Positions 43,948 through 63,541 are shown, counted from the first letter of the stretch. The stretch is 64,000 nucleotides of DNA from Pocillopora damicornis (GCF_003704095.1 NW_020847620.1:62001-126000), one strand, 5' to 3'. Translations and numbers: made by a program. The notes: generated by a model from the sequence alone, not told the origin.

Positions 43948-44046
43948 TTCAAATTCATATTTATACCTTCAAATCCATATTTATACCTTCAAATCCATAT
44001 TTATACCTTCAAATCCATATTTATACCTTCAAATCCATATTTATAC
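43948..44046. repeat. 20-bp minisatellite x5 (TTCAAATCCATATTTATACC)
   Basis: Five near-perfect tandem units. Confidence 0.95.
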
Positions 44047-46148
44047 ACATCTGCAGGACCACCTCAATGTATTGTTATCTGTATAGTATCTGTTACATAT
44101 TTTGCGTTTGCCTTTGAAACAACCGAGACGTCCTGAAAAGATTTTCGAAAGAAAGAAAACGAATGAATCAAAACAAATTAAACGAAGCAAAAAAGAACAT
44201 AAGCAAAAACAAACAAACAAAAGCAAAAAAAAAAAACAAAACAAAAAAGCAAACAAAAGCGGAAATAAAAAACAAAACAGAACAGATGCATGCAATTTAA
44301 TCTGTCTTTACACTTTACTTACGAGCTCGATATCTATATCTATATGGCCTCGGGTCTTCCAATTCTAGAGGAAAAAGTAATAAAATATCTGTTTGTAAAA
44401 ATAATATTTCATGTTTCGGGACGAGGAGTGGAAAGATGGAGAGGTGGTGATGGAGTAGTTGTGTTTGCCTGAGACTAAAAACGGATTGTGAAACTTAAAT
44501 TAACCATTAACCGTTCAGCTATATCCACTAAAGCTTGAGTATGTTTTAAACCCAATGAAAACGTTTCTCTTCAAAGAAGCTTCTTAAAGCGACGTTTGTT
44601 GAGTTCATAGTTAGCCAATCTAAAGAAAAAAGTTAGTGACTACTTGAAGCTATGGAAAACACACTTTATCAGTACTATTCCTGATGATATGAATGCAGTA
44701 TTACTTTACACAGAATTTATTTTAAAAGGGGTCCGTCGTGGAATTTAGTGCACCCTTATATATTTTTTTTTCTGGGAGGAGGGGAGGTCTAACTTGTTTG
44801 TTATTCGAGACAGATCAGAGAAATCTCATCAAAGTAAAATTGCAAAATTTTCTTAGTAATAAAAATCATGTTGATTCTTACCAGTTTTTATGAAGTTATC
44901 TCTGAGTTCCTCTTCCGGATCTTCCAATGGGGAAAAAATTGATGATTATGAACAACCAAACAGAATTAAAAAAGGCAGAAAACTCACAAAATCATGTTTT
45001 AGATAAAGTTTCAATTTCGTAAAAATTAAGCGGGTCATTAATTAACTTTTACTTGAAGTCCATGTGCGCGTTTATTCGTTGTATGTCCAATCGTAAAATG
45101 CCACATCATTGACAACACAATATTTAACACTATAATCACGTTACTCAGTAATAGTACAACAACAATACATATCATCAGCAACAATAGATTTCTAGCAACT
45201 ATACGGTCGAATTCCATTTTGTAAGGGGTCGATATTTATTGGAGGATTTTGTTTGTGTCAATATAACCCATTTACCTAATCCCCTTATAAGGCTCTGTAA
45301 TATTATTCTGATCTCCTTTCATTGGCAGTTCATCGGCAGTCAATTTCCTTTGGCACTCCCTTTATATTGTGTTGGCGAAGATTGACCTCGTCCGTTCTGA
45401 AAGCATGTGATCCCCTACAAAATAAGACGGTCCCCCGCGTTCCCCCTGGCGTAAATCGTGACTGTTTCCCTTAAATGGTCTCCTCCAGTCTCAATCACTT
45501 GCAAGTTATAAATGGATATAAGTGCTTTCCATTTTTATAATTAAGCTTATGCTCTCTGGCTCAAACGGAGAATGTGATGAAACGAGAAGTATCTTAAAAC
45601 CCAGCCGGAGCATCAGCAACCATTTTTTCTTTCATCTTACTTCTTATCTTCCCAAAAATAGCCATGAACAGGTCATTCAAAAGATGGTTTATGCGTCGAA
45701 AAACATACGATATTGGTGACTTGAAAAAAATGTTTGCCATCATTATTATCGTTACTTTTATTGTTGTAGTCTTTGTTATCTTCTGATTCCTGCACAGATG
45801 CGGAAAATTAATCTCAATGCATGTTTTGCCATTGGGATTAGCTACTTTTTTCAATGCAGCGAAGCGTTATGAAAAAGCCCTGGGAAAGAAACTCAGTAGT
45901 GCAAATTAAAATGGTAAAACAACCACCGGAAACTTTTAGGAGAGATCGTTGTGGGCGTTGCACTCGCTGACGACATGTAACAAGTCGAAGTTAGATTTAC
46001 TAGAAAAGGTCAAGTATTTTGACAAAACAATTTGTTTCATGCTGTGAAATAGAAACTAACCTCTTAATTTCCCATCCTCCCTCTCAAAGTAGGTCTTCGC
46101 AAAGACGATGGAGAACAAAACAAGAAGAAAGCCAAGTTTCAGATACAT
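44041..46148 (-). CDS. Secreted prepropeptide, 86 aa: signal peptide + acidic propeptide + cationic 4-Cys peptide (candidate antimicrobial peptide or toxin)
   Basis: Exons 46148-46061, 44920-44882, 44364-44323, 44132-44041, all with phase-1 GT-AG junctions, 261 nt. Protein: MYLKLGFLLVLFSIVFA-KTYFEREDGKLRDPEEELRDNFIKTELEDPRP-YRYRYRARRLGCFKGKRKICNRYYTDNNTLRWSCRCV*. TATA-like TATATAAA at ~46211-46218 (-). Confidence 0.72.
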
Positions 46149-61007: not shown

Positions 61008-61108
61008 CNNNNNNNNNNNNNNNNNNNNNNNNNNNNNNNNNNNNNNNNNNNNNNNNNNNNNNNNNNNNNNNNNNNNNNNNNNNNNNNNNNNNNNNNNNNN
61101 NNNNNNNN

Positions 61109-63541
61109 TTCTGAGATGCAGATCTTGTTGTGTCATTTGCCATCGAGTCACACATCATCTGAACACGTTCCGAATATACGCGCAAAGCAAAAACTGAAGT
61201 GGACTGCACTTAACTCCAAAAGAGTATTTCTTAATGTCNNNNNNNNNNNNNNNNNNNNNNNNNNNNNNNNNNNNNGTGTCTATATGGATTTCCATATTGT
61301 GAACGGACTTAGTTTATTTGTGGGTCAGGACTTAGTTTATATCGCTCTCTTGTTGATTAGCATTTTATTGCTGCATTCTCTATAAACTTTACCCAATTGG
61401 NNNNNNNNNNNNNNNNNNNNNNNNNNNNNNNNNNNNNNNNNNNNNNNNNNNNNNNNNNNNNNNNNNNNNNNNNNNNNNNNNNNNNNNNNNNNNNNNNNNN
61501 NNNNNNNNNNNNNNNNNNNNNNNNNNNNNNNNNNNNNNNNNNNNNNNNNNNNNNNNNNNNNNNNNNNNNNNNNNNNNNNNNNNNNNNNNNNNNNNNNNNN
61601 NNNNNNNNNNNNNNNNNNNNNNNNNNNNNNNNNNNNNNNNNNNNNNNNNNNNNNNNNNNNNNNNNNNNNNNNNNNNNNNNNNNNNNNNNNNNNNNNNNNN
61701 NNNNNNNNNNNNNNNNNNNNNNNNNNNNNNNNNNNNNNNNNNNNNNNNNNNNNNNNNNNNNNNNNNNNNNNNNNNNNNNNNNNNNNNNNNNNNNNNNNNN
61801 NNNNNNNNNNNNNNNNNNNNNNNNNNNNNNNNNNNNNNNNNNNNNNNNNNNNNNNNNNNNNNNNNNNNNNNNNNNNNNNNNNNNNNNNNNNNNNNNNNNN
61901 NNNNNNNNGAAGGGAATTTCTGGATAAGAAGGGTTAAAAGCCAATATTTATTTGCAAAATTCTTCAAATAAAAGTTAAACACTAAGTCAGAAAATTTAAA
62001 CGTTACAGAAAAGANNNNNNNNNNTTTGAATGTTTCATTTATCGACAAGGGCACTATCTTTTTTAATTTCATCGTATTTGATTGCATCTCATTTTATTTC
62101 TTATTGTGTTTGGTTGTATTCTTCTGGGGTAAGGGGGNNNNNNNNNNCAGTCATTAAGATGGTTCACTTTATCTGGTCCTTTTTCTTTCTCATTTGAATG
62201 CGATATCGAGCTGATATTGAAGCGTTAGACGATTCTTCTAAATGTGATGAAATTCTAAATGAANNNNNNNNNNNNNNNNNNNNNNNNNATAGTCAAATAA
62301 CAAACTAATGGCTGGAATAGTTGATTACATTTGATAAAAAAATCGTTGTGAACCTGAATTATCTGAATATTCGATTTATCGCCATGACTCGCGAAATGAG
62401 CTGAATATATCANNNNNNNNNNNNNNNNNNNNNNNNNNNNNNNNNNNNNNNNNNNNNNNNNNNNNNNNNNNNNNNNNNNNNNNNNNNNNNNNNNNNNNNN
62501 NNNNNNNNNNNNAACGTACCATTATCCTTCCTTATTGATGGACCTGCTGCTCAGCAGCCTGTGTTTGTTTAGTTTTTTTCTCATAGAACGGTTCACTGGT
62601 TTTTCCCAAGGCAAGAACCAAATATATATTCCTTCTCTCCTAAATATTATGGAGTTAAAATCGAGCCAGCCTATTTACATGAAGGGAACTTCTGGATAAG
62701 AAGGGTTAAAAGGCAATATTTCTTTGCAAAATTTTGCTTGCAATTCTTCAAATAAAAGTTAAACACTAAGTCAGAAAATTTAGACGTTACAGAAAAGATG
62801 TCTAACAATTTGAATGTTTAATTTATCAACAAGGGCACTATCTTTTTTAATTTCATCTTATTTGATTGCATCTCATTTTATTTCTTATTGTTTTTGGTTG
62901 TGTTCTTCTGGGGCAAGGGGGGATTAAGGTCAGTCATTAAGATGGTTCACTTTATCTGGTCCTTTTTCTTTCTCATTTGAATGTGATATCGAGCTGATAT
63001 TGAAGCGTTAGACGATTCTTCCAAATGTGATGAAATTCTGAATGAAAAAAGCAAATAAATGCCACAAGATAATAGTCAAATAACAAACTAATGGCTGGAA
63101 GAGTTGATTATATTTGATAAAAAAATCGTTGTGAACTTGAATTATCTGTATATTCGATTTATCGCCATGACTCGAGAAATGAGCTGAATATATCAATAGT
63201 TTAGAATGATTAAGACTGTTTAAAGTATTAAAGTTTTGGAGGTGTAAAAGCATCTCTTCTCGACTTTTATTAGATAATGCCGAAGATGTCGATCTGACAA
63301 CTCAAAACAGACTCTAGCAGGTTCAAATATACACACAAAATTTTAAAGCATGACGTTAAGACACTTTAATTTTTTGTGCTACTCAACACCCATGTCAAAT
63401 CCATGAGATGATATAAAGCACAGTCAAATAAGGGCTTAAACTTCATTTTTGTTTTGTCTTAACTTTGAGGCGCATGAAAATGTTTCTGAAACTGTCTTGT
63501 TGTTGCTTTGCTTTCGGTTACTTACGCGAGGTCCTTCCTTA
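61109..63541 (+). repeat. Inverted segmental duplication of 51850-53640
   Basis: 62513-63541 is the reverse complement of ~52940-51850. 61276-61400 matches ~53360-53260 and 61109-61238 matches ~53635-53515. 61910-62411 is an additional partial copy. Confidence 0.85.
63480..63541 (+). pseudogene. Frameshifted, truncated copy of exon 1 of the 51907 prepropeptide gene
   Basis: ATGTTTCTGAAACT--GTCTTG shows a 2-nt deletion relative to the 51907 copy. Homology stops before the donor site, close to a repeat insertion at ~63570. Confidence 0.7.

Follow-up and report, generated by a model that had tools for sequence, protein, structure and literature searches.

What is a coral making with a cluster of small genes whose predicted secreted products seem to begin acidic and, in two of the types, to end strongly basic? 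The question is raised by a 64,000-nucleotide stretch of Pocillopora damicornis DNA (assembly GCF_003704095.1, contig NW_020847620.1), which covers positions 62001-126000 of a 376,222-bp contig; we call this whole stretch the window and use its own numbering unless contig positions are named. An earlier note on the window, made from the sequence alone, had proposed a family of prepropeptide genes with acidic propeptides assembled from very short exons. Part of the answer is firm: the window holds a real tandem cluster of small secreted-protein genes, so far met only in the Pocilloporidae, partly annotated and uncharacterised. For the rest, the reading that we prefer, at a probability of roughly 0.5, is that these genes encode self-neutralised precursors of cationic effectors. 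This is of real interest in a field where very few secreted effectors of corals have been characterised; for P. damicornis, damicornin is to our knowledge the only named antimicrobial peptide. The cluster offers two uncharacterised products, namely a conserved, hairpin-like peptide with four cysteines that lies behind a furin-type site, and an abundant transcript for a protein of one acidic and one basic block, and either could bear on defence against Vibrio, prey capture, attachment or skeleton formation.

How might such a precursor work? The gene plan that we have in mind would run from a signal peptide, on an exon ending in phase 1, through one or more acidic phase 1-1 exons and a short (E/A)-D-P hinge exon to a strongly cationic C-terminal part. 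In the single-copy type, which we call type A, a cut at RARR would release a 28-residue peptide with four cysteines and a net charge of +6, folded as a hairpin according to a structural model; in the multi-copy type, type D, a Glu/Asp block of net charge -34 precedes a Lys/Tyr/Arg/Gly tail of +30. The acidic block would neutralise the cationic part within the secretory pathway and in storage, and proteolysis would then liberate the cationic effector against microbes or prey.

The common architecture can be read directly. First exons lie at 46148(-), 51907(-) and 60516(+), and the 3' end of a fourth lies at 58525(+), just where the earlier note had placed its copies; all end in phase 1. Signal peptides were called by inspection: each first exon encodes a hydrophobic core and then a small residue in position -1, at VFA|K, TYA|R or CTA|S. 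The internal exons that can be resolved (39, 42, 39, 39, 27, 177 and 60 nt) are all multiples of three and phase 1-1, so that the note's statement on phases is borne out for every one of them, and the EL(E/A)DP and SEDPRP exons that it listed are present. This pattern is in itself unremarkable, because symmetric phase-1 exons behind a phase-1 signal exon are the usual layout in secreted animal proteins.

The best-resolved member is gene A (LOC113685832), on the minus strand; its exon model was built by inspection and by a script. Exon 1 (46061..46148, 88 nt) encodes the signal peptide and the start of the acidic pro-piece and ends in phase 1 at the donor G|GTTAGT; exon 2 (44882..44920) is a 39-nt acidic micro-exon, DPEEELRDNFIKT, in phase 1-1; exon 3 (44323..44364) has 42 nt, ELEDPRPYRYRYRA, and a donor, GTAAGT, that holds a TAA and looks like a stop if read through; and exon 4 (44041..44132, 92 nt with the stop codon) completes RARR and encodes the 28-aa cationic peptide. 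A shorter gene ending at ...YRARK was considered and rejected in favour of four exons, because the TAA sits within the consensus GTAAGT donor and the RefSeq product goes on into the fourth exon. Indeed, the joined product is identical to XP_027059195.1, filed in RefSeq as "uncharacterized protein LOC113685832". The suggestion that the system was undescribed is half right: uncharacterised it is, and RefSeq already has models of gene A and its orthologues, under the name 'uncharacterized protein'. Literature searches on the accession and the LOC numbers came back empty, as did those for a Tyr/Lys-rich secreted protein of corals.

From its N-terminus, the type A protein consists of the signal peptide (VFA|KTY), an acidic pro-piece of net charge -5, ELEDP, RYRYRY, RARR and the last-exon peptide LGCFKGKRKICNRYYTDNNTLRWSCRCV; the -5 of the acidic part faces +12 in the cationic part, of which the last-exon peptide, with its four cysteines spaced C-x7-C-x13-C-x-C, contributes +6. 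RARR fits the convertase motif R-x-K/R-R, and the run RYRYRY-RARR-LGCFKGKRK and the four cysteines are invariant in all three aligned sequences. An AlphaFold 2 (AF2) model, whose input was only three sequences, is poor overall (mean confidence score, pLDDT, 59.9); it places a helix at residues 3-24, in the signal region, and a beta-hairpin formed by residues 67-73 and 79-85, with a pLDDT of 72-79 over residues 60-86. Given the conserved RARR and the predicted cysteine hairpin, processing to a small cationic peptide is the natural reading of type A, and that peptide could be antimicrobial or toxin-like.

Orthologues of type A occur in P. verrucosa and Stylophora, and in all three species the gene stands in synteny beside a PAN/EGF gene. 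The protein search was run exon by exon against a library of 1.84-billion proteins, and the last exon of gene A alone led to two proteins, one of 86 aa from P. verrucosa and one from Stylophora. It is Stylophora that provides direct transcript evidence that the type A micro-exons are spliced together: a Logan RNA contig of 1,161 nt carries an uninterrupted frame of 111 aa and falls into six blocks on the Stylophora locus, which have AG/GT borders and include the exons of 39 and 45 nt. A failure of the micro-exons to be joined in transcripts had been named in the earlier note as one of two findings that would count against its proposal, and for type A in Stylophora they are joined. In addition, two isoforms are annotated for the Stylophora gene (LOC111325756), X1 with 111 aa and X2 with 98 aa, which differ by exactly the 13-aa (39-nt) exon, and in isoform X2 K has given way to E at the junction, the change that skipping of a phase-1 exon should produce. 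Gene A has four coding differences between P. damicornis and P. verrucosa; all of them alter the protein and three cluster in the hinge (EDPRP vs EDTGR), against 3.8% difference over the surrounding 6.3 kb, although these coding counts are too small for a test of selection.

Two smaller observations belong with this gene. In Stylophora the four-cysteine exon is internal, being followed by one more that encodes an acidic C-terminal extension (about 25 aa) missing in Pocillopora, so acidic parts are possible on either side of the cationic peptide. In the window, six tandem copies of a 20-nt unit (43928-44046, 93% matches) start at the stop codon of gene A and open its 3' flank.

Gene B, also on the minus strand, extends the family and complicates it. 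Its four exons have good splice sites and are in phase 1 throughout: exon 1 (51820..51907, 88 nt; signal peptide and RPYLTEEQQEVR, ending in phase 1), the 39-nt acidic micro-exons 2 (51228..51266, DPEEDLNDEYMEN) and 3 (50960..50998, DQEDEIGDDYKEF, read from its sequence and splice sites), and exon 4 (50678..50704, 27 nt, ELADPARAS), whose donor is G|GTATGT and which, if read through, stops after ...SGM. A candidate last exon (50375..50487) has a good acceptor and a fitting frame and gives the protein a non-cationic end. In its DNA, the exon 2 region agrees at 77% identity with the corresponding region of the P. verrucosa orthologue of gene A, itself 100% identical to gene A exon 2, and by this similarity gene B is a paralogue of gene A; its exon 3 is probably a duplicate of its exon 2. 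The first exons of A and B agree at 12 of 29 residues. In P. verrucosa, exon 1 of gene B differs by a single synonymous change and the other exons are nearly unchanged; no annotation covers gene B in that species, and in Stylophora there is no counterpart within 10 kb of gene A. Gene B may be a functional gene for an acidic peptide or a recently decayed copy. A search of the whole genome (234.35-Mb assembly, 4,393 contigs) with the cargo exon of A and with exons 1 and 2 of B returned only self matches, at a sensitivity that must be low because the known 77% match between A and B was missed too.

A diverged, inverted duplicate of the region upstream of gene B lies on the plus strand at 61109..63539 and matches 51846-53640 at 78-90% identity. 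At its end sits the copy that the earlier note had called dead at 63480(+), and rightly so: this is a truncated B-type first exon (63480-63539) with a 2-nt deletion, frameshifted and with no donor.

The third kind of gene is the multi-copy type D, whose structure is clearest in an ungapped copy beyond the window (73319-75273, continuing the window's numbering; contig 135319-137273). There, the first exon has 79 nt, the acidic exon that follows has 177 nt and a GC donor, the next exon (DEEEVSEDPRPVPRKSKKKY) has 60 nt, and the last has 173 nt and encodes a 56-residue tail. For transcripts, we placed Logan contigs of four RNA runs from four studies (X1, X2, X11 and X14) on this paralogue. In X2, a single contig of 516 nt starts 7 nt upstream of the ATG, ends 21 nt downstream of the stop and has all four of these exons joined. 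The same joints appear in X11, a polyA library, with a 506-nt skip that resolves to 2160>2667 (GC..AG) and a 578-nt skip with GT..AG borders, so that a GC-AG intron in the type D gene is confirmed. Word depth of the contigs, a weak proxy for expression, is 5,000-26,000 over the exons in X11 as against 0-15 in most intron bins, with values of 84-349 where the last intron holds a repeat-like stretch, and this contrast in a polyA library marks an abundant, spliced type D mRNA.

With this paralogue at hand, the list of micro-exons in the earlier note needs to be revised, since three of its six entries were misread or unsupported. Two of them, AQEDLNDEDFET and RDEENERD...DEDEET, had been taken from different copies and are no micro-exons, because in the ungapped paralogue they are the opposite ends of one and the same 177-nt exon; the lesson is that assembly gaps can split one long exon into seeming micro-exons. 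The third, DAPLTEDT, is a 24-nt open stretch with AG and GT borders (60702..60725, plus strand) that is included in none of the transcript contigs listed and is degenerate in the expressed paralogue; it has no support as an exon because, among the loose ends listed (27 others fell outside the listing), all those at the exon 1 donor and the acidic-exon acceptor join exon 1 straight to the acidic exon.

What, then, is the type D product? It has 162 aa, no cysteine, and a signal peptide ending in CTA|SY. Its acidic block of 74 residues is 34% Glu and 20% Asp, with a net charge of -34, and the 69 residues after SED are 26% Lys, 25% Tyr, 17% Arg, 13% Gly and 9% Pro, with a net charge of +30. These numbers are what make the strongest rival explanation so attractive, which is that the protein is never cut at all and works whole, as a polyampholyte of two blocks and thus a secreted structural material able to condense on itself, with its tyrosines perhaps oxidised or cross-linked, and that acts as adhesive or cement, as primer of the skeletal matrix or as capsule material. 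Such a tail composition resembles that of mussel foot proteins 3 and 5 and of the Lys-rich and Gly-Tyr-rich shell matrix proteins of pearl oysters, the charges of the two blocks nearly cancel, and the mRNA is as abundant as one would expect of a structural product. The tail also varies by in-frame insertions and deletions, being 15 nt shorter in the X2 transcripts and differing by 15-18 nt among copies, as in repetitive structural proteins, and among its many dibasic pairs no single clean convertase site stands out. Against it we set the conserved furin-type site and the folded cysteine peptide of the relative, type A, which point to processing; the excess of Glu over Asp in the acidic block, unlike the Asp-rich skeletal proteins of corals; and the lack of similarity to adhesive or matrix proteins in our searches. 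For type D taken by itself, this explanation fits the tail composition, the charge balance and the mRNA level about equally well as release of an effector and is a strong rival; as an answer for the cluster it is tentative, and we would sooner bet against it than on it. There is also a combined version, somewhat more doubtful again, in which type D is secreted whole, as a self-neutralising two-block protein that condenses into a coacervate-like material open to cross-linking through tyrosine and serves for attachment to substrate or skeleton or as a matrix primer, and type A is an offshoot of the same gene plan, processed to a toxin or antimicrobial peptide. If true, this version would make type D a coral counterpart of the underwater cements of mussels and tube worms.

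Are types A and D then one family? EDPRP is common to both at the same place in the gene plan, with the third codon position different in all five codons, and beyond this motif types A and B have no significant similarity to type D (B vs D, E 1.6, by tblastn within the window). On this evidence common descent of A and D is plausible. The same comparison bears on the proposal with which the analysis began, of a conserved signal-plus-pro cassette carrying hypervariable cargos, its acidity tuned by the gain, loss and skipping of phase-1 micro-exons. Much of what this presupposes is there: the internal exons are all phase 1-1, gene B has two of the acidic 39-nt exons and gene A one, and exon skipping is annotated in Stylophora, so that the claim of gain and skipping survives and the cluster provides a clean case of both in a young gene family; the cargos of A and D differ, and type D is larger in both its acidic and its cationic part. 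The cassette itself is another matter, because its signal and pro exons are not conserved across types (12 of 29 residues between A and B, and the E value just given for B and D), and only the architecture and the short EDPRP motif are common to them. The tuning of charge by exon number fares no better: most of the acidity of type D sits in a single 177-nt exon, the 24-nt exon is missing from the transcripts listed, and just two cargos are known, from two genes, with charges of -34/+30 in D and -5/+12 in A, the latter a poor match, and with no match at all in gene B. We therefore consider this explanation improbable. What does stand of the original picture is a tandem set of small secreted precursors, with an acidic pro-region and then a cationic C-terminal part, that is subject to birth and death, with copies in every state, intact, broken or truncated, directly seen.

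Less probable still, to the point of being far-fetched, is that the genes encode precursors of neuropeptides or hormones, with processing at acidic residues and X-Pro dipeptides. Cnidarian precursors are cleaved after acidic residues and trimmed by X-Pro aminopeptidases, and a DP-RP(-VP) run does stand immediately before the basic part. However, that run is not kept in the orthologues of gene A, neither A nor D contains repeated peptide copies, neither cargo ends in the Gly plus basic residues of an amidation signal, and so abundant an mRNA as that of type D is atypical of a neuropeptide.

Several findings also weigh against our preferred reading of neutralised effector precursors, which we hold at even odds. 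The first set concerns gene B, which has the most acidic exons of all and, in its sole plausible model, no cationic cargo: the charge is already -16 up to the hinge (by hand count on the candidate model), and with the candidate last exon, the only downstream exon that fits, the product has 101 aa and a net charge of -19. The second concerns the type D tail, in which Leu and Val make up only 3% each, so that with so few aliphatic residues it is not amphipathic in the manner of typical membrane-active peptides; its dibasic sites are moreover so numerous that cleavage by a convertase would shred it. Then, the D-P of the hinge is not kept in the type A protein of P. verrucosa (EDTGR in P0001, EDPGR in P0010). 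The strong type D depth comes from one library, X1 and X14 having no cover of the exons and only repeat-like matches in the last intron, and contig word depth is an unreliable gauge of expression. Finally, searches of Pfam, PDB and ESM Atlas, which included no direct comparison with periculin and arminin sequences, tied the products to no known family of antimicrobial peptides or toxins; more generally, ESM Atlas, Pfam (E <= 1) and PDB sequence searches gave no usable match for types A or D, and no relative was found on JGI metagenome contigs.

How does the cluster compare with systems that are already understood? In Hydra, periculin-1 combines an anionic pro-piece with a cationic effector, and arminin is active through its C-terminal part (review, PMC11767717). 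The likeness lies in lineage-restricted, multi-gene families on both sides; going by descriptions, periculin has eight cysteines and arminin is helical and has none, whereas type A has four and is modelled as a hairpin, and the type D tail is rich in Tyr, Lys, Arg and Gly with almost no aliphatic residues. Damicornin, from the very same species, and AmAMP1 have six cysteines and are related to ShK toxins (PMC11767717). With these the cluster has in common a coral-specific, secreted cysteine peptide made from a prepropeptide; the six-cysteine ShK-type domain is absent here, type A having four cysteines and type D none, with no Pfam match at E <= 1. Damicornin, too, reportedly has an acidic pro-region. 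For the mechanism that we propose, the closest analogy is with mammalian alpha-defensins and eosinophil major basic protein, in which an acidic pro-piece of about matching charge keeps a very basic, toxic product from doing harm before processing; there is no relation in sequence or taxon, and in the coral such cleavage is presumed.

For the rival of an intact material, the likeness to mussel foot proteins 3 and 5 and to pearl-oyster matrix proteins is one of tail composition (about 25% Tyr, rich in Lys, Arg and Gly, basic and probably disordered); no homology to these proteins was detected, and we know of no long acidic N-terminal block in them. The acid-rich proteins of corals (CARP/SAARP) have long Asp-rich domains, as against a 74-residue block here with more Glu than Asp. 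Conotoxin and frog-skin peptide superfamilies, which the earlier note had invoked as models, are similar in that they consist of small secreted precursors in tandem clusters that undergo birth and death, and differ in their hallmark, a signal and pro-region that stay highly conserved despite different cargos, which this cluster lacks.

Within the window itself, type D is represented by copies C and D, which by their sequence belong to the same multi-copy gene type and are both broken by gaps. Of copy C (plus strand) there remain the last 18 nt of exon 1 (58525..58542), the remainder falling in the gap 58091-58524; the last 68 nt of the long acidic exon (59197..59264), which are positions 110-177 of the 177-nt exon and encode RDEENERD...DEDEET, with the GC donor at 59265 and the 5' part in the gap 58643-59196; and the first 39 nt of the 60-nt exon (59835..59873, DEDEVSEDPRPVP), cut by the gap at 59874. 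Copy D (plus strand) retains a complete exon 1 of 79 nt (60516..60594), which encodes the signal peptide and SYLAEKRE and ends in phase 1, and the first 37 nt of its acidic exon (60972..61008, AQEDLNDEDFET), cut by the gap at 61009; its variant of this exon is 6 nt shorter, and the X2 RNA contig carries the same variant. Runs of N cut the two copies at 58524/58525, 58642/58643, 59196/59197, 59873/59874 and 61008/61009, and because they fall inside exons, continuity and frame of C and D are not readable from the window. Nominal gap lengths are of no help, as they do not fit: the distance between the 3' ends of exon 1 and the acidic exon is 722 nt in copy C and 559 nt in the ungapped copy.

Another type D copy lies across the end of the window. 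An intron piece of it, on the minus strand, occupies 63863..64000, and its exons 1 and 2 follow past the window at contig 126232-126310 and 126098-126121. The piece 63863-66596, which lies between two gaps, thus carries type D exons 1 and 2 on the minus strand, and directly past the next gap after 66596 the plus strand has the remainder of an acidic exon together with exon 4 and a last exon that is open; a misoriented scaffold piece may explain this switch of strand as well as a real inversion would.

Searching the whole genome with the type D first exon gave six copies, all on this contig, and the family runs more than 25 kb past the window. Local BLAST, extended over 40 kb fetched past the window's end, placed exon 1 copies at 58525(+), 60516(+), 64310(-), 73319(+), 80736(+), 83419(+), 84576(+) and 87810(+). 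The terminal and acidic exons occur, genome-wide, on this contig and one tiny unplaced contig only. Turnover of copies is plain to see: at 84.6 kb, the acidic exon is interrupted by a premature stop and the last exon by a frameshift; the exon 1 copies at 80.7 and 87.8 kb (contig 142.7 and 149.8 kb) are without downstream type D exons or a donor and look decayed; and the copy at 66.7 kb has a tail short by 18 nt and is otherwise open. Much farther along, at contig 164156-164578 on the minus strand and outside the window, two acidic open stretches, EYLEGVNELGEMNDEEEENG and ...FEDVDEDSEDHEALKNPTWK, with splice-like borders, are 82% similar to part of the type D acidic exon and may be a further diverged or decayed member of the family.

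When annotated full-length type D proteins were sought, the last-exon query returned only read-through open reading frames on Tara metagenome contigs, in a search limited to proteins of at most 154 aa as against the 162 aa of the product. These database entries have a mundane origin, in that bacterial-style gene calls on coral DNA in the Tara Pacific metagenome assemblies read through type D introns and so create 'proteins' of 55-88 aa; one of them (P0007), which matches the frameshifted type D copy, represents 37 sequences on 9 contigs.

A few features of the window stand apart from the gene family. The PAN/EGF gene downstream of gene A (36988-38069) encodes a secreted protein outside the family, with 526 aa in P. 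verrucosa and 288 aa in Stylophora. The region of about 55000-55854 recurs at 56416-57210, with assembly gaps in between, and inside this segmental duplication lies a 39-nt minisatellite with nine and eight copies (55064-55416 and 56446-56759), the same array being present in P. verrucosa. At 54089-54205 there is a near-perfect palindrome whose 30-nt arms, 93% complementary, are 57 nt apart; with a second pair nested in it, it resembles a small foldback element or one of the miniature inverted-repeat transposable element (MITE) type.

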